Origin: Orbicella franksi
Lineage: Eukaryota
Reading direction: 5' to 3'
DNA: 64,000 nucleotides
Assembly: GCA_964199315.1 (NCBI GenBank)
Contig: OZ116698.1
Location: 30,194,001 to 30,258,000 of the forward strand
Numbering within the stretch: the stretch's first letter is position 1; each line of letters begins with the position of its first letter. Under the pieces are notes generated by a model. The model saw only the letters and a list, made by a program, of their open reading frames with translations. It had not been told where the DNA came from and did not search any database. Positions 3,801 through 64,000 of the stretch are shown here, in pieces. A program made the translations under genes and the position numbers.

Positions 3801-6800
3801 GACTCAGGCTCAGTTTTCTCCTCTGTCAACTATCCCACAAAAAAAATCCTGGTGGTCGCAGTTTGATAATTAAATATGTCATGTGCTTTCTTGTCTTGAC
3901 AGTTGCTTTATCAAGCTGACGAGCCTAGGATCATGTATTCGTACCTTCTTCCTAAGGACTACCCTAAAAAACGCGATAAAGAACAGCAACAACCCGCAGA
4001 GCCCAGCAATTTTGGTCAGAGAGGGTTCAAGTCCCAGGCTACCCAACCACCACCCAACGGAAATACTTATGCTTGGAGACTAACAGGGTTTACACAGTGC
4101 ACCCACTCATGTGCAGGAGGTACATTTAATAATACACAAACCTAGCCAAGACCATTTCACCTTTTTTTTTAAAAAAGTGGATATCACACTTGTGACTTTC
4201 CTAGTTTATTGTTATCAAGTATATCACTTGTTAAATAAGCGAAGTTTTGCTGTAAACCGTTGCGTCTCTCCTGAATTCGGGTTAATAGACTGTTTAGCCA
4301 ACAATAATAGATCGAGAATATTTTTACTTTTTGGAGCGTGTCAAGACTGTCTTAGGAATGATGTTTTTCAATATAGTTTTGTAAGTAGTATATGACACTG
4401 TGTTATAATAGTTGCAAATTAGACCGACAGAAGTGTTGAATACGACGCCCAGCGGAGTATTTAGGACGAACTCTTTATCGTTTGGAAATGTGATGAACGT
4501 GTTTGTTTTTTTTTGTTTGTTTGTTTGTTTTTTTAATGTTATTGCCTCACAGGACACAGAATAAATGATTACAGTACTAGATACTACTTGGGAATAACTA
4601 CTTACAGAGCTGACATTAACTATTGTACTAGACGAAACTTATTATTCTTACAGTACTATACTTACAATGTTCACACTAATAGTGTATACAGCACCTTTTA
4701 ATCCACAAAAATAAATCTAACACATTACAATAAAAAGAAAAAAACAACAACAACAATGAAGATGGTACAAAAGGGAAGAAAACGAAACAGGTGTTTCAAG
4801 TGTATTGTTAGGTTGATTACTTATAGCATTACTAGTATGTGCGAGTGAAGATAAAGAGCAGATTGCTGTGAAAAGCTCGTAGGTGACAGCGTATGTACGA
4901 GATGGTTGGCAAAGTTGATAGCTGCAAACACTTCAGAGGAAGTGATGCTATCTATCAGTAGGTATATATTCTGCAAGAGGTTCCCATTTTTCCATATCGC
5001 CGCTTTTTGTCTCCAACTCGAGCCTTGATTTCAGAAAGCGTAGATAATGGTCAAAGTTAGGGGACATTTCTTTAGATTTGGCTAGCCAGATATGACGTCG
5101 AGCTAAAAGAAGGCAATAGTTAATTTGAAGTGCAAATTTTGACGTTTCCGGTTTCAGACCAAACGTGTTTGTGATACGTTCTTGATCGAGAAATGGTAAA
5201 AATGTAGGACCATTCGTAAACATGATTTATTTTCAATTATTACTTGTTTGTAACTGTCAGAACAACTTATTCCAACGTTTGAGTTCTCACTTCAAACAAC
5301 ATCAAACCGAAGGATACTGACTCTCTAACTGACGAAATTCGTATTTCCCAATAGGCATTCAAACAACGGTGTACCAGTGTGTTACATCAGCTGATAACTC
5401 AGTTGTTGAACAGTCCCTGTGTCAATGGAACTTAAAACCAGCTCAACGACAGAGAGTCTGTAACCTACAGCCTTGTTCACCAAGGTAAACTAACATCAAT
5501 TGTATATTTTCCGTTTGCCGGCTGGGCTTCTCCTGCTATACTCATTGCAAATGGCTTTAACCAAGAAGTATCAGTAGTTTGCCTTCTGAAACTGTTCGTG
5601 AGTGACGTTTCTAAAATTTGAGAGATAGACATGTTCTGTGTTAAGTGATTCTGCCTGACAGGAAGAACGAAAAAGTACCATGTAAAAATATGCCGCATCA
5701 CCGAAAATAAAAATAGTCATCGAACGATTTTCTTCTTTTTGGACTGTTTGTTTGCCTGCGTGCACAAGTCTACTATTTCCTTTCACACGGATATTTGGTT
5801 TTTCACCGGAGAGGTCAATCTTGGTGTGGTTTGGGCTGACACAAATTTACGTCTGAAAAAAACTAAAACAATTCACCTCAGTGAAGGCTTTTGGTTTCTA
5901 GCACTGCCAGGGATGTCATTAAAGTCCGAAATTAGAGCCAAATTGAAGAATCCGAGAGCCTGTTTGTGAGGCTGTTCTAACCACAGCGCTGTCTGTCTGG
6001 ACTAATAAGTTCCCATTTTCAATGCAGGTGGGAACCAGGAGAGTGGGGTCAGTGTTCTAAGACATGTGGAGCCGGTATGCAGATCAGAAGTCTTCTGTGT
6101 AAACAGCTTGTTGATAATAATGGTGTCAGGAAACAGCAGATGCTACCGATCAGCTACTGTCGCCAGTGGGAGAGACCTGCACCCAGCCGCAACTGTAACT
6201 TACAGCCCTGCCCTCCTCCGGCAAACTGGACAGTCGGGGAGTGGAGCAAGGCACGTCACTTTCAGTTTTTCTTCAAAAGCAAATTCTGGCGTTGAACATT
6301 TAGATATAGCGAAAAACTCTTCGGAGTTGTCCCATGGGCAACACAATTAAGCGCCGCAATAGGTAGCTGGCTGACGTTTCGAGTGTTAAACCTTCGCCGA
6401 CGCGAATCCGATTGCATTTTTTCTCTCAACTACTTCCTGATCCATCTAATTCCGCTAACTTTTTTTTGACTTTGTTCTACAGTGTTCCGTGACATGTGAA
6501 AAAGGAGTCAAACAGAGAGTCGTGTCTTGTGTGGATATCAAAAATACCACAGTCAAGGAAAGGTTCTGTAAACACAATCCAAAGCCACCGACAACAGAAT
6601 CGTGTTTTGCTGGTTCCTGTAAAACTGACTGGGTTGTAAGCCACAAGTGGTCTCAAGTGAGTGCTCAGTATACATGCCCAATTGCAGAACAAAGCATACC
6701 GTGATCACTATCATAATAAACCGACGGCATATCGACTACCCAGAAGTCTGCATGCAGTCTTGCCAATTTTCCAGGTCTAACACCGTTTGAATCTGTTATA

Positions 6801-57830: not shown

Positions 57831-58030
57831 CTCTCTGTACATTCTTTCTTTCCACAGCAGTTCACCGACATGATATCTATTTCATATCTATTTCAACTTT
57901 GACACCTATCACCTTCCTTGCTGATTGACCAAACACTGTCATAAAAGGTCTCCTTCAATCATTGAGGGAAAATGTACACGTCAGATGTACTTACATTCAT
58001 TTGATAGTCTCTCTTAACTCTAAACAGTTG

Positions 58031-58724
58031 TTATGTAGATGAAAGAGTCATAAGATATTCCAGAGCCTTGTCACCATCATTATTAGCAGCCTGGAGACAA
58101 TCCAGTATATTATTCTCCTTGAAGCCATATTCCTTAAATTTTTTCACCAGTTCAAGAAATTCTACTGCCTGTAAATAGAAAACAGTTTAATTGAGGTCAT
58201 CCATGCAGTGTGTATAAGTCTTGTTTCCAACTCCTACAAGCTAAGGGAGACAGTGTCCTAATAGTGAGTGTGTTGGGGACTTCAGATTGAGTTGTCTGTG
58301 ATTCAGCCTTCACTGGGGTAAGAGACTTCAATCTTAATCTCTCTCCACCCAGGATTTGAAATGGGCACTGTAAAATGTCGGGTGCAGTTCTGTTATGGAC
58401 TAAGTTTCAATCTTAGTCAACACTTCATGCCACTGTAAATGGAAATACAGTTAAACCCCGCTATTTTGAACTTTCGGCAGAATCAAAAAATAGCTTGAAA
58501 TAGTGGGGTCTGCCTATACTTTAAGAGCTGGCCCAATGACTGTACACCCCTAGGCTCAAAAGCAAGAAACCTGGACAAGGGTTTGTACACAATCAAGAAT
58601 ACATGTACAAACATACCCATACCTTAGCTTTCTCAGTGTTAGTGTAAACAAGGGCAACTTCTACAGTGTCTGCTGGATAGTTCATTTCACACAACTCTTG
58701 GGTAGCAAGAAGAAATTCCATAAC
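58031..58724 (-). CDS. UBAP1: UBAP1-like ESCRT-I subunit, last two exons (SOUBA repeats); 5'-partial
   Basis: Exons 58724-58623 (VMEFLLATQELCEMNYPADTVEVALVYTNTEKAK) and 58168-58031 (AVEFLELVKKFKEYGFKENNILDCLQAANNDGDKALEYLMTLSST*), phase 0, canonical splice sites. They match the overlapping-UBA C-terminus of UBAP1 (...SKFKEMGF...NNDQDNALEDLM). Confidence 0.8.
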
Positions 58725-60300
58725 CTGTAAAGATTTGTGAAAAGATTAACAGCTAAATGCAATGATTTAGACTACATCCTGACCCTGGTCTTCTTTACAA
58801 ATTAACTGCTGTTTGTATATGAGGTGGTCACATTTTCCAAAGTTCTTTTAATAACCCAAGTGTTGGACTGGCCACTAGGATTGTAAATCTGACCACCTGC
58901 TCAAGAAAGGTAACCTATTTACACACAAAACCATGCTATGCCCAGTTGTTCAAAGTTGGATTCAATTCATGGTTGTGACTTCTAAATTCTCATGGGTTTA
59001 AGAAGTTTACTAGAGTACTGTTTCGATGAGTTTGTAGAAGTGATGCATCAAAGCAATAATGGGAGCTACTATGGAGAAGGTGGGGAGCCAGTGGTATGTC
59101 ACATCCTCATGACCATATTTCCATATTACTTATTTATGGAGGGGTTACTGTTCTTGTTGATTCATTTTAATACATGAAAGAGCAAATACACTCATTAAAG
59201 CAAATAATGTTGGAGGGGGAGAATTGTTTGGGTTTTTTGCTGCTTTTACCCTGGAGGGCTTGAGTGAGAGTCAGGACAAGACCAAATAAGTTAAAAAATG
59301 CATTGGTACTACAATGAGTACATTAATCAGATCTAGCAGAACATTCTTGACTCTGATCGGTTTTACTGGGGCCTACTTGTCACATTGTTGGTGTTGACAT
59401 CCAGTTACTGGTACATATCCAATTACAATTACCAGTGCACACCCACATAATTCGCATGTCAACTTCTGTTCAGGAAATACAATGGATTAATGTTCATTAC
59501 CGTTTGTAAATCTTACAGAAAACACCACTGACTATTCCCTCAATGAAGTTCTCAAAAACTTCTTTAATCTTGAAATTTGTTACTGATACATTCAGTTAGT
59601 ATTTGGACCTCATGTCATACAATTGAGAGAAACATTATTGTACTTGAAGGTGAAATACAAGAGATCCAAGACATTTCAAATAGGCCTAGTGCTACATGCT
59701 CATCCAATTTTGCAATATTACTTGCCTCATGGCTGCTTACATTGTACTCCACTCACTCCAATTACTACTGATGATACTTATGTATTATAACCAGTTGACA
59801 GTCTACTGCTAAAGGTACAATTTAGGTCAATATTTGGGTTGACACTATGTTTTAATGTGACTCAAAATGATTGCAAAGTTTTACGTTTTTGCCTGAAAGT
59901 GCAAACTTCAAGTCCTTCTAATACAGGTTAATAAGATATCATTAATTTTAATTTTCATGAACCTTTTCTGATCTAACTCTACAAAATATGCAAAATATTG
60001 TTACAGATTATTCAAATGCTTCAGCTGTGAAACACCCTACCAAGAGTAAAGTCATGAAACCAAAATCGTCCTTAAGCTTAGAACAACTGCTCTAGACCTT
60101 TGTTTTTCTGCAGACAAGCAAACCATAAACAAAGGCCCATGACACAATGGTATGCACTCAATTCCTAATCTCTGTAATAACTTTACATTTGCTATCCCAA
60201 AAAAAGGACACTGTTATGCAACATCTTTGGCAGCACCAAGTACAGACAGTGCTTGGCCTGGCTGAAATAAAATTTAGAGTCTGGTTGCCCACAGGGAAGT

Positions 60301-60600
60301 GGGAGGCGTGGTGGCCTCATGGTTAGTGTGCTCATCTCCTGATCAAGCGGTCCGGGTTTGAGCCCTGGCCAGGGACATTGTATTGTCTACTTGGGCAAGA
60401 CACTTTAGTCTCACAGCGCCTCTCTCTACCCAGGGGTGTAAATGGGTACCGGCGAACTTAACGCTGGGGGTAACCCTGCGGTGGACTAGCATCCCGTCCA
60501 GGGGGGAGTAGAAATACTCCTAGTTGCTTCATGCTACGGAAACCGGGATAAGCTCCAGCCTGATGGGCCACTTGGCTCGTATACAGACTTTACCTACCTT
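60301..60600 (+). mobile_element. Near full-length tRNA-derived SINE
   Basis: A box TGGCCTCATGG, B box GGGTTTGAGCCC, conserved body, and a TACC-type tail (ACTTTACCTACCTT). Confidence 0.9.
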
Positions 60601-61234
60601 GCCCACAGGGAAAGAGCAACAGACAAACTTGCCAAAAATTAAAACAAATTTATGACAAATGGCATCCAACTTCTCGTTGCATGCGCAGCCAGAGTGTAGA
60701 TTGAAACAATTTGCCTCACTTTTAAAGTTTTTTCTGTTGTTTAGAAATCTGTAAATTTTACATATGGCAGTAAGCAACAAAAAAACATTGAAGGTCTACA
60801 GAGTATACTCCAAAAGGCTACAACCTACAACTTACAATATTATTATTCTTACTCTGCAGAGTGTTCTACAGTGCTTGACCATGACTGCATGGTTACATTT
60901 AGAATTCTGCAAGTCAGAATTAAAACACCTGCTTGCTATGGAGCTGTGTAAGCTTCATGGAAGTCTGAAGTGAAAGGAGAGACAAAGGAAGCAAACAAAC
61001 AAGGCTCCCCTGAAGGAACAGGTGGTCTGAGACAAAATACTTCAAACTGTTTTCAATTGTTTGGTTATTCTCTTTTTCTAGAAAACCTGACTACCTAGAA
61101 GTTATTGCCCAAGTATTAGACCTTAAATATTGCATTCTTTACATGGCCACTCTTTGCTGATAGCCAAGTCTGTCAAGTTTATACATTGTTTTGATTGAGA
61201 GTAAGTATGATTGTGCTTCAACAGTCATAAGCAA

Positions 61235-63325
61235 CTAGCACATCAATGATGTCAGATATAGATTTAGTGCCACATCACCACCTGCTTCATTGGCATTGAA
61301 AGTTCCACAGCATGAAGGACATTTTGTTTTAAGAAGATGGCCAGAGTAATTCACCACTTTTGATTCAACAGTACACAAGGGACACTTGTATTTGGCTGCC
61401 TGAATTCCCTGCAGTGATCTCATCAATTTGCCAGCAATTTCAGCACCATGTTGATCGTAAGCTCTCTTTTCTTTCTGACTCAAGTTGTCCAAAGTCCAGA
61501 ACACATCAAAAAACTTTAGGCCAAGGACATCTGCATTCTGCACCCTGAAAAACCCATTGTCTGCCCAGTCATCCCCCCATGAATTCATCAGACGTAAGCT
61601 CTCGGCATCATAACTTGTCAGAACTACTGCATGGCCACCAGGGTTGCTTGTTGAGTGATGCTTTGAATCAAGGTAGGATCTTGTAAGGATTCCTTTGGGA
61701 TTTTGCTCATAGAACTGGTAGAACCGATCCCACTGGGCTCCACTCAGATAAAATCTGGCAACCACCGGTTGTTTTGCAGAAATGGCCTTCATAGCACCAG
61801 TAGCATCTACCTCTTTGCACTCCAGGCGATACTTTGGACAAACTTCTTCAAGAACTCTTTTGGTTGGGGCTCCGTGCTCTCCATATTTAGCAATTAATTC
61901 ATGTCTCAATTCAAAGAAATCTGGATAACCACCATCTCGTCCTATGATGCGCTTCATAGCAAGGTGTAAAACAGCAGCAGATGCATTTGCATAACAGGTT
62001 CCTCCATGTTGTCTCTTTGCTCCAAAGTCGTCACTTGACTTGTTGATATAGATATCCAGATCAACTGTAGAGAGCATATCCGAAAGAGCATCTTGGCTCA
62101 GGGCACCCTTCTTGGCCATGTCACAGACATCTTTGATAACATCTGGATGGTTCACTTGAAAAAAGAGTCTGGTTTCATTGTTGTCAATATGTATCTTCCA
62201 TCCTCTCTTGACAAACAGAGTGCGTGGTATCTTCTGAGTTGTAATGGTGGAGCTCATTCTGAACATGAACTTTGCCGGATCTTGCCAATGTTCATCTTGA
62301 ATGCTGTACAAATGACGAGGATCAGAAAGCTTTTGGTTTGTTATGAAACAACTGACCATGGTGACTCCAAGATTTGACAAAGTTTGAAGTGGTGGGTCAT
62401 TTCCATCAGTAGGCATACCATCAGAGAGAATGAATAGCAGTTTCTGATGATTGGCAAACTCTTTGTACGAAAACAGATCCACAGAATGATGCATAGCTTT
62501 CATGAGTGGAGTGTCTCCATAAATGCAGGGCTCAATTGTTTCCAGCAACTCATCAACCCGTTCATTAGTTAGTTCTTGAACACCAACACTAGCATGCAGT
62601 ATTTCTGATGCATCATGAACACTCATAATTGCAATTTTGCTGACATCCACCAATTGGAATTCTGCAGCTTTGCTCTGTCTGGTTGCAGCCATGAGTCGTT
62701 CACCCTTCTTAATTGCTTCTTTAACTGACCCTTCTGTGCCATGTGATTGCAGAGTGGAACCAAAAATTGGAACATACCCTGCTGCAAAAAATGCACCTTC
62801 AGTGGCAACATTACGAATTACTTTACCTCCATGAAATAAGTTTAATTCACGACACTCTCTAGGAAGACACTCATAAACAAACTTTTTTGTAAAATCACAG
62901 CTTCTTTGTAAATAGTGCAGCATTGCAGCAGCAGTAGTATCATCAACAACTTTGAGCAAGACATCCATCTTTCCCCAATGGCGAACTCTTGGCGCTCCAT
63001 TTCTTTCAAGAATAGTCAGTGCTTCATCTAACATGTCTCTTTTGTTTGCTCTTGATCTTATATCTCCAATCTGAGCCTGTTCCTTAATTACTTCCTGCTT
63101 TGCTTTCCTAACAGTACTTAACAAATCAAAGACTTCAGGATGAGAAGGACTACCAACAGCTAAAGCAAAGGTCTGGTTTGAAGATGAGACATCATGCTTG
63201 ATCAATTCATCCACCACTTTGAAGATTGACTTTGCCCATTCTCCACCTTCCTCCTCCACCCTGCCACCAACACTATTTCTCATGGAGTTTGAGACATCCA
63301 CTAGAATGCCTATCAGGGTAGACAT
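61235..63325 (-). CDS. vWA domain + papain-like (clan CA, C1-type) cysteine peptidase + C-terminal Zn-ribbon protein, 696 aa, single coding exon
   Basis: Uninterrupted ORF. MIDAS residues DVSNS (aa 10-14), GDTPL (T272) and ILSDG (D302). Peptidase motifs RQHGGTCY (Q439, C444), GGHAVVLTSY (H565) and LMNSWGDDWADNGFFRV (N581). CPLC...CPSC at aa 648-672. ATG chosen at 63325, just after an acceptor-like TTTTTTGTTCAAG. Confidence 0.92.
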   Translation of the reverse strand: MSTLIGILVDVSNSMRNSVGGRVEEEGGEWAKSIFKVVDELIKHDVSSSNQTFALAVGSPSHPEVFDLLSTVRKAKQEVIKEQAQIGDIRSRANKRDMLDEALTILERNGAPRVRHWGKMDVLLKVVDDTTAAAMLHYLQRSCDFTKKFVYECLPRECRELNLFHGGKVIRNVATEGAFFAAGYVPIFGSTLQSHGTEGSVKEAIKKGERLMAATRQSKAAEFQLVDVSKIAIMSVHDASEILHASVGVQELTNERVDELLETIEPCIYGDTPLMKAMHHSVDLFSYKEFANHQKLLFILSDGMPTDGNDPPLQTLSNLGVTMVSCFITNQKLSDPRHLYSIQDEHWQDPAKFMFRMSSTITTQKIPRTLFVKRGWKIHIDNNETRLFFQVNHPDVIKDVCDMAKKGALSQDALSDMLSTVDLDIYINKSSDDFGAKRQHGGTCYANASAAVLHLAMKRIIGRDGGYPDFFELRHELIAKYGEHGAPTKRVLEEVCPKYRLECKEVDATGAMKAISAKQPVVARFYLSGAQWDRFYQFYEQNPKGILTRSYLDSKHHSTSNPGGHAVVLTSYDAESLRLMNSWGDDWADNGFFRVQNADVLGLKFFDVFWTLDNLSQKEKRAYDQHGAEIAGKLMRSLQGIQAAKYKCPLCTVESKVVNYSGHLLKTKCPSCCGTFNANEAGGDVALNLYLTSLMC

Positions 63326-64000
63326 TGTTCTGAATCTTGAACAAAAAATCAACATGTAAGATTATTATGGGCAAAATGTTATCAAGGCTTTAATCCTAAA
63401 TTTACAGTGAAACTAGTTTTTGCAAGCAAGGAATATTAAACTCTGATGTTAAGGATAAACGATATTTAATAATAATATTTACGGATAACTCAGGAACAGA
63501 AAAGTGAAGAAAACAAAAAAACACATATATATGCAAGCAAAACAAAATATTGTGAAAACAAAATAAACCTTGAAAAACCTCAAAACTACACCAGACAATG
63601 AGATGACCAAGAAAACAGCAAAAAATGAATGTAAAAATCACCAAAATGAAAAGGACATCAACTTCAAGATATGTACAAGTGCTAAATAATTTACAGAGAA
63701 ATAGCAAAACAATAATATTGCCTATGACCCTGTTGATCCTAATTTCCATTTTAATTCCACGAAAGACAGAAAGGATAATGAAAATTACTGATTTCTGAAC
63801 ATCTTTATGCCTTTTACAAAGAAAACACAAACATAAATAAAACTGTTTTCAAAAGAAAATGGATGAAGCCAAATGTATCAAAAGAGTGTGGAGCAACATA
63901 TATGCAAAAATAGTGCTGAAAATCTGAAACACAGAGTGCGAAAAGTTTTCCAACTCTTGAAAAAAGGATGTTTAAAGTTCCAACTATACTCTGGGCAGGT

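Follow-up and report, generated by a model that had tools for sequence, protein, structure and literature searches.

The subject of this work is a gene for a cysteine protease in a stretch of 64,000 nucleotides from the genome of the stony coral Orbicella franksi (assembly GCA_964199315.1, contig OZ116698.1, positions 30,194,001 to 30,258,000 of the forward strand; hereafter the window, within which our positions are counted). We found that this gene, located at 61235..63325 on the minus strand, encodes a stand-alone member of an uncharacterised family of eukaryotic proteins, in which a domain of the von Willebrand factor A type (vWA), a papain-type peptidase and a zinc ribbon are joined in a single chain, and that this family has been tandemly multiplied in stony corals.

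Reading frame, predicted folds and location

The coding sequence is complete and consists of a single exon. An earlier reading made from the letters alone (hereafter the sequence-only reading) had claimed an intronless open reading frame (ORF) of 696 codons, and we indeed found 696 uninterrupted codons, followed by a stop codon at 61235-61237, as judged from the ORF list, a residue script and RNA contigs that cross the gene without internal joints. The longest call begins at the first ATG and spans 61235..63355 (-), corresponding to 706 residues; the second ATG, at 63325, gives the form of 696 residues. Homologues of many phyla open at the same MxxL(x)G(I/L)LVDVS as the 696-residue form and the upstream ATG is out of frame in a related coral locus (L044), so that, on the basis of these sequence comparisons, we assign the true start to the second ATG. 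The ORF has a G+C content of 42%, compared to 36-45% over 2-kb blocks of the window, which is free of N, and it is colinear with a contig of 97% identity (L042).

Our script reproduced all residue positions named in the sequence-only reading. The metal-ion-dependent adhesion site (MIDAS) is composed of D10, S12 and S14 together with T272 (in GDTPL) and D302 (in LSDG). The protease residues are Q439 and C444 (both in QHGGTCY, with a Gln-Cys spacing of 5), H565 and N581 (in NSWG), and the zinc ribbon has two CxxC motifs, CPLC (648) and CPSC (669), separated by 17 residues.

On the minus strand, the vWA domain begins with strands β1-β3 and the DxSxS part of the MIDAS (residues 1-67; 63125..63325), as delimited by residues, alignment, models and structural search. 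It is followed by a helical insert within the vWA domain (residues 68-265; 62531..63124) containing a disordered loop at ~160-195, which was defined from models, structural alignment, entropy and the ratio of nonsynonymous to synonymous substitution rates (dN/dS). T272 and D302 lie in the C-terminal portion of this domain (residues 266-405; 62111..62530), whose last helix (394-409) leads into the protease; residues, models and structural search support these limits. A linker, of low confidence at 419-439, and the papain-fold C1 peptidase, including Q439, occupy residues 406-615 (61481..62110; Pfam, Foldseek, structural search and profile), and the codons of the catalytic C444, H565 and N581 are found at 61994-61996, 61631-61633 and 61583-61585, respectively. 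The protein closes with a long helix (616-645) and a C4 zinc ribbon (646-680) formed by C648, C651, C669 and C672 (61286..61480; residues, alignments and model).

To describe the folds, we employed a full-length model built from an alignment of 32 sequences, with a mean predicted local distance difference test (pLDDT) of 78.8 and a predicted template modelling score (pTM) of 0.68, and a model of the N-terminal 405 residues alone (pLDDT 87.1, pTM 0.81). The whole model was compared with 48,161 PDB representatives by the structural search program VIA-align. In these models, all three folds, i.e., vWA, papain and zinc ribbon, are confirmed. The best vWA match was 4fx5 with a Z-score of 17.7 and a root mean square deviation (rmsd) of 2.4 Å, and further matches with Z-scores of 15-17.7 included Mfa5, integrin I domains, TRAP, ANTXR2 and TFIIH p44. 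The vWA domain with a complete MIDAS, as claimed in the sequence-only reading, was thereby found in its fold and in all five residues, and these ligands are kept in at least 90% of the relatives.

Approximately 176 residues align to vWA domains at 2.4-2.9 Å, scattered over model residues 1-412. The domain thus contains ~200 extra, helical residues (68-265), in good agreement with the insertion of ~190 residues ahead of GDTPL that had been proposed from the sequence. The insert enters past strand β3 and exits just ahead of the MIDAS threonine loop. Judging from known topology, its connections should lie on the MIDAS side of the vWA domain. Within the insert, the pLDDT drops under 50 at residues 162-193. 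The Pfam VWA family (PF00092) scored below its gathering cut-off in the window protein (18.3 vs 23.8 bits), compared to 25-32 bits in paralogues, which we attribute to the large insert splitting the domain. Likewise, a Foldseek search with the N-terminal model alone gave weak PDB matches (best E 1.6e-3) because the insert interrupts the alignment, whereas the vWA fold became apparent when VIA-align was run with the whole model.

We also examined whether the C-terminal half might adopt another fold than that of papain, and the prediction did not refute the papain assignment. Residues ~407-615 superpose on papain-family enzymes with Z-scores of 14.4-15.5 in VIA-align, and cathepsin B gives the cleanest match (Z-score of 15.4, rmsd of 2.7 Å over 177 residues). 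Foldseek searches against the PDB and Swiss-Prot models returned papain, Der p 1, mexicain and cathepsins over residues 410-611, with E-values of 1e-5 and TM-scores by target of 0.5-0.62. In a search of the family profile against PDB sequences, C444, H565 and N581 aligned to Cys25, His159 and Asn175 of mexicain and papain. Here, the profile segment HAVVL...NSWG..W..GFF matched the His159...Asn175 region with an E-value of 1.7e-5; the segment TCYANA against CWAF of mexicain (Cys25) scored -3.5, which is not significant alone and agrees with the fold alignment. Pfam Peptidase_C1 (PF00112) scored 23.3 bits against a gathering cut-off of 20.7 and covers the His/Asn half (507-597) only. In the model, the zinc ribbon takes the form of short hairpins about both CxxC pairs, and the paralogue P0036 gives a weak Zn_ribbon_TFIIB match.

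In the window protein we found neither a signal peptide nor a membrane segment, the maximum 19-residue hydrophobicity (KD19) being 1.11, and Pfam gave no match to an I29 propeptide. The N terminus is strand β1 of the vWA domain, modelled at high confidence. In the model, the last vWA helix runs directly into the protease, where a mature-type papain fold is predicted to begin at about residue 407. The papain domain holds only three cysteines, and therefore the three disulfides of subfamily C1A cannot form. The lack of the C1A hallmarks (signal peptide, I29 propeptide and disulfide cysteines) described in the sequence-only reading was thus borne out, and as all three are missing, the enzyme is probably cytosolic (or nuclear).

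Conservation, transcription and genomic setting

A word-indexed search revealed 472 relatives among the candidates scored. In an exhaustive search of representatives at 50% identity, we obtained at least 1,226 clusters at E<=0.001 and at least 261 at E<=1e-30. The latter are clear relatives, and some members of the weaker tail may have just one domain, vWA or C1, in common with the window protein. All three domains persist across the 32-sequence alignment, down to 25% identity, in which C444, H565 and N581 are invariant and the MIDAS residues, Q439 and the four zinc cysteines nearly invariant. Among 162 full-length relatives, the catalytic, MIDAS and zinc-ribbon residues are kept in 150-160, far above chance (Cys444 in 153 of 161, His565 in 160 of 160, Asn581 in 158 of 160 and Gln439 in 155). 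In 6 of the 162, Ser replaces the catalytic Cys, as in Plasmodium SERA proteases.

The family spans a broad range of eukaryotes. Cnidarian members come from Acropora millepora, A. muricata, A. digitifera, Montipora foliosa, M. capricornis, Dendronephthya and Hydractinia. Other animal members were found in the annelid Owenia, the nemertean Tubulanus, the bivalves Ruditapes, Mya and Saccostrea, the echinoderm Holothuria, the tardigrade Paramacrobiotus and the flatworm Macrostomum, and non-animal members in the foraminifer Bolivina and the fungi Aspergillus nidulans and Paecilomyces. The ESM Atlas holds a cluster of 322 members, mostly Ascomycota. A more distant protein model, named C1A papain peptidase, also has an N-terminal vWA-like region. 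The sole vertebrate among the named relatives retrieved is the fish Coilia grayii, and no standard animal model organism occurs there, which may be the reason why the family has remained unstudied.

Two of these copies deserve mention in their own right. The Coilia grayii copy (L041 10001-12022, on chromosome CM090580.1) is intronless, has 673 codons and adjoins a reelin-like gene. It is 60% identical to an annelid protein, 55% to the coral protein and 66% to its nearest relative, P0115, which lies on a 2.6-kb contig; it may represent a transfer into that fish lineage. The flatworm protein P0126 (Macrostomum lignano, 3511 residues, named ribonuclease H) is 50% identical over residues 75-695 and is either a merged gene model or a copy beside a retrotransposon.

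Coral paralogues, the window gene included, number at least 90; in our gene tree, all 90 stony-coral sequences form a single clade (support of 0.996) that splits into one subclade of Acropora and Montipora and another that holds the window gene. The sister of the coral clade is a group of annelid, fish and unknown sequences (parent support of 1.0), and the octocoral copy groups with a clam. The gene tree therefore departs from the species tree, which implies either ancient paralogy followed by numerous losses or gene transfer between eukaryotes. Tandem copies are present: P0037 has another copy 2.3 kb upstream of it, and a single contig of 1.36 Mb carries as many as 8 family proteins. Together with the 90-member clade, these tandem paralogues show the lineage-specific expansion that the sequence-only reading had listed as a mark in favour of horizontal transfer or immune function.

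Several relatives depart from the basic architecture. In P0060 from A. muricata, Pfam detected a TRADD-like_N domain (PF20694; 30.6 bits vs a cut-off of 23.7, E 3e-7), and P0067 carries a complete GT4-conflict glycosyltransferase (E 1.5e-73) ahead of the vWA-papain-zinc ribbon module; each is 67% identical to the window protein over the whole length of the latter. In the coral paralogue P0001 (JGI contig, 885 residues), the whole papain domain is duplicated, giving a vWA-papain-papain-zinc ribbon order, and the called protein lacks the first ~22 residues, DxSxS included. In the Acropora paralogue P0029, the helical insert (approximately residues 74-247) is tandemly duplicated inside the vWA domain. 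P0047, P0036, P0041 and P0022 belong to the same class of 850-880 residues and share the length and shifted domain positions of P0029.

The sequence-only reading had named no characterised animal protein with this architecture. This holds for experimental work, but the architecture string itself had already been catalogued: in the supplementary tables of Kaur et al. 2021 (eLife; PMC8195603), A. digitifera LOC107356762 is listed as "GT4+TRADD-N+vWA+SERAprotease+ZnR". From its A. muricata counterparts, we take the module of LOC107356762 to be the same as that of the coral family. The term 'SERA' is absent from the main text of that study, which does not treat the insert, the MIDAS, the range of the family or its function. 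Literature searches by locus names or accessions of family members returned nothing, and searches by domain words gave only general conflict-system papers; a transcriptome paper on immune challenge of Acropora mentions only an unrelated vWA calcium-channel protein. Thus, the architecture was catalogued earlier, and we found no paper that analyses it.

The gene is transcribed. Between 51 and 86% of the words sampled from the ORF are present in 14 RNA libraries. When contigs of the poly-A RNA run X1 were aligned to 58001-64000, the depth was 25-90 across 61235-63400, with zero differences over 60571-62221 and no joint within the ORF. The depth decreased to 0-1 at 63401-64000 and to 0 in the adjacent intron (58201-58600), and since it falls to about zero in the flanks, the RNA signal is transcript-shaped and does not reflect DNA carry-over. 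Raw reads of run X24 gave 0 hits on the ORF, with 12% of the run sampled and an organism code of B, compared to A in the best-matching runs, so that this result carries no weight.

At the 5' end, the transcript boundary lies at 63326..63400 on the minus strand, with an RNA depth of about 0 upstream, as judged from RNA contigs and sequence. A pyrimidine tract and an AG immediately precede the start codon and may constitute a splice acceptor. An upstream exon on contig L042 was considered and rejected, as the first bases of L042 match genomic sequence of L044. Within positions 1-60 of L042, a one-base difference pattern near the start codon shifts the frame, so that the gene caller placed the first residue at Met15; either the assembly is wrong here or the start of this allele is damaged. 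At the 3' end, RNA contigs run on for ~1.5 kb past the stop codon and, together with the depth, delineate a probable 3' untranslated region at 59750..61234 (minus strand). Inside this region, the stretch 60200-60600 shows an RNA word depth of 17,000-77,000, compared to tens elsewhere, with many loose ends in three RNA runs, as would be expected of an element that is either present in very many copies or very strongly transcribed. Rfam gave no match anywhere in 59500-64000.

Purifying selection acts on the gene overall. We determined dN/dS by the Nei-Gojobori method against three close relatives (93%, 85% and 82% identical). Whole-gene values were 0.38-0.43 against the 85% and 82% identical copies and 0.67 against the 93% identical copy, where changes are few. 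The papain domain showed the lowest values of all regions (0.07-0.25), followed by the helix and zinc ribbon (0.27-0.29) and the C-terminal vWA part (0.32-0.39). The insert reached 0.73-0.98, compared to 0.28-0.35 for everything else (Fisher p of 0.013 and 0.002). The sequence-only reading had named a silent gene, or a dN/dS near 1, as grounds for abandoning it, and for the whole gene we observed neither.

A UBAP1-like host gene contains the protease gene within one of its introns, both genes having the same orientation. Two exons of the host gene (58622-58726 and 58002-58167; 58002..58726, minus strand) are separated by a GT..AG intron, as supported by an RNA joint at 58167/58622, and the preceding exon of the host transcript is absent from the window. 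In L044, which encodes a protein of 82% identity (P0006), the preceding host exon is located 4.6 kb upstream of the protease ORF and the UBA2_UBAP-1 exon 7.5 kb downstream; positions 5352-5381 and 19567-19731 of L044 are the host-gene parts of the same nested arrangement, which is thus conserved in two corals. No inverted, direct or terminal repeats bounding the ORF were found, nor a transposase or viral gene adjoining it, and within 10 kb of the protease there are no other long ORFs, only short unannotated ones. The same host intron harbours a reverse-transcriptase ORF of 794 residues (RVT_1, zf-RVT) at L044 16397-18781 and L045 15626-18010, downstream of the protease gene in the opposite orientation. 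This ORF is absent from the equivalent stretch of the window.

We also searched for relatives outside eukaryotes. A pattern scan (alignment A3) of 185,579 species genomes for prokaryotic relatives returned 23 matches, none of them related, although the scan was narrow and is no proof of absence. A scan of 2.9 million IMG/VR contigs for viral relatives yielded 39 loci, which showed only the His/Asn half of generic C1 peptidases. The horizontal origin raised in the sequence-only reading was weakened. A recent transfer into corals appears unlikely, given the wide eukaryotic range, which takes in fungi, foraminifera and many animal phyla, the lack of a full-length prokaryotic or viral relative in these scans, and the nested position conserved in two corals. 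Transfer among eukaryotes is possible and compatible with the conflict between gene tree and species tree.

A candidate function and competing explanations

With this information at hand, we considered how such a protein might work. Our preferred proposal, for and against which we see the balance as even, is that of a protease inside the cell, gated by a ligand and serving a pathway of immune or cell-death type. Through the MIDAS metal together with the variable insert, it would bind a target or adaptor protein at one of the acidic residues of the latter. This capture would bring the substrate to the protease or, alternatively, shift the last vWA helix and thereby free the protease active site; integrin I domains and factor B provide the model for such a shift. 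Cleavage would then be the output of the pathway, in some paralogues wired directly to TRADD-N. Gating of the protease by the metal-dependent vWA domain is inferred here by analogy.

The role as an innate-immunity or stress effector that the sequence-only reading had suggested finds circumstantial support in the TRADD-N and GT4 fusions, in the fast-evolving insert and in the nearest vWA structures outside the family, which are bacterial and in some cases fused to TIR or DarT. Four observations weigh on the other side. The omega of the insert is never significantly greater than 1, so its rapid change may reflect relaxed constraint on a partly disordered region and not diversifying selection. 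Pfam found no TRADD-N, Death-like or other adaptor domain in the window protein itself. The TRADD-N and GT4 fusions are taken from automatic gene models, which may have joined adjacent genes into one. Finally, the family also occurs in fungi and protists, and an animal-type immune role is not simply transferable to them.

The main rival, which we consider rather unlikely, is a cytosolic peptidase with regulatory or housekeeping duties outside immunity, for example a processing, quality-control or ubiquitin-like-protein protease, whose vWA domain and zinc ribbon only dock it to a complex. Docking is a known use of vWA domains, as in Rpn10, TFIIH p44, Ku and Sec23. Such an enzyme would fit an old family that is broad in eukaryotes, fungi and foraminifera included, an enzyme core under strong purifying selection and a window copy without an adaptor domain, and the matches to intracellular vWA-plus-zinc-finger proteins (TFIIH p44) span the whole model. 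However, the range is patchy, with Coilia the only vertebrate among the named matches retrieved, and large tandem expansions in corals, fusions to TRADD-N and GT4-conflict domains and a fast insert are unusual for housekeeping enzymes.

The remaining explanations are each unlikely. The gene could be carried by, or left over from, a mobile element or virus moving horizontally between marine animals, its multiplication being selfish copying. We regard this as improbable, even though the coding sequence is intronless in the coral and in Coilia, fish and annelid copies stand beside the stony-coral clade and an octocoral copy with a clam, a flatworm relative sits inside a 'ribonuclease H' model of 3511 residues, and a reverse-transcriptase ORF occupies the same intron in L044. 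Against these stand the lack of flanking terminal or direct repeats and of an adjoining transposase or viral gene, a dN/dS well below 1, and the viral contigs that gave only generic C1 peptidase matches. In addition, two coral genomes show the same position in the UBAP1-like intron, although the proteins encoded by their copies share only 82% identity.

A secreted or extracellular protease with a digestive, venom or skeletal-matrix role, like most animal C1A enzymes and vWA proteins, is very improbable: the GT4-fused form of A. digitifera does bear the mark 'SIG' in a second table of Kaur et al. 2021 (PMC8195603), and vWA proteins are common in the coral skeletal matrix according to the literature, but the window protein starts with vWA strand β1 and no hydrophobic leader (see KD19 above), lacks the C1A disulfide cysteines and ends in a C4 zinc ribbon typical of intracellular proteins. 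We hold a non-catalytic pseudo-protease, acting as a scaffold or decoy only, to be equally remote, because the triad and the oxyanion Gln are kept at the frequencies given above and the papain domain has the lowest dN/dS, despite the Ser that replaces Cys in 6 of 162 relatives and an oxyanion Gln one residue nearer to the Cys than in papain.

Returning to the ligand-gated protease, we tentatively extend the proposal to the family as a whole, in a form that we consider doubtful yet worth stating. The proteins would make up an unrecognised class of intracellular ligand-gated cysteine proteases, from fungi to animals, in which a MIDAS-bearing vWA domain and a hypervariable cap sense a pathogen- or danger-derived protein and switch the papain-type protease on. 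Corals would have diversified this class as a germline recognition repertoire, with some copies plugged into TRADD-N death signalling. If true, this would be a cytosolic counterpart of the complement convertase principle. To our knowledge, nearly all papain-type proteases described from animals are zymogens that are secreted or lysosomal; the family would be a prodomain-less, probably cytosolic papain type under the control of a metal-dependent binding domain. Innate immunity and cell death are central to coral bleaching and disease, and the tandem expansion in corals and the TRADD-N and GT4 fusions make the family a testable candidate component of either. Homologues in Hydractinia symbiolongicarpus, a tractable species, and in Aspergillus nidulans, under UniProt accession Q5ARZ0, allow genetic tests.

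Comparison with known systems

With the enzymes of MEROPS family C1 (papain, cathepsins B, L and C, xylellain, Der p 1), the window protein shares the fold, the catalytic triad, the oxyanion Gln and NSWG..W..GFF. It differs from them by a Gln-Cys spacing of 5 instead of 6, an identity of only 15-20% and the flanking vWA domain and zinc ribbon, and from subfamily C1A by the missing signal peptide, I29 propeptide and conserved disulfides. As for the SERA label, no SERA chain occurs among the PDB matches listed by the sequence and Foldseek searches, and falcipain-2 ranks level with plant and animal enzymes.

Complement factor B and C2 resemble the window protein in placing a MIDAS-bearing vWA domain directly N-terminal to a protease in one chain, and C2a and the C4b2 proconvertase are among the vWA structural matches of our model. 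In factor B and C2, binding of a partner by the MIDAS positions and activates the protease. Their protease is, however, of the trypsin-type serine class, they are secreted and their vWA domain lacks a large insert, so that the relation is an analogy and not a homology of the whole architecture.

The sequence-only reading had likened the vWA domain to TerY-like proteins. This likeness was not upheld: there was no TerY_C match at E<=1 and no match of the window protein in PADLOC or NCBIfam, the MIDAS motifs are generic, and TerY clusters are only weak look-alikes (score 0.63-0.64), the neighbour of our gene being the UBAP1-like host gene. The nearest vWA structures outside the family are bacterial, some of them fused to TIR or DarT. 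A parallel may be drawn to the MoxR-vWA ternary conflict systems (eLife 9:e52696, PMC7159879), in which one polypeptide carries a vWA domain and, behind it, an effector that varies and in many cases is a peptidase. Unlike in these systems, no MoxR ATPase or third component lies near the window gene, and the helical module sits inside the vWA domain and not after it like vWA-L. As eukaryotic genes are not arranged in operons, a distant partner is conceivable.

Most similar are the TRADD-N expansions described by Kaur et al. 2021 (PMC8195603), where TRADD-N and GT4 serve as markers of invertebrate immune-type expansions. That study also reports cnidarian DED+TRADD-N proteins ending in a vWA domain and, in its supplement, a Nocardia toxin with adjacent VWA and Papain domains. 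The window gene stands alone and carries neither GT4 nor TRADD-N. Its three domains match those of the LOC107356762 module in kind and order, and it belongs to the same coral family, in which lineage expansion and variable architectures are both found, i.e., the clade of 90 members, tandem copies, duplications of the insert or the protease, and fusions.

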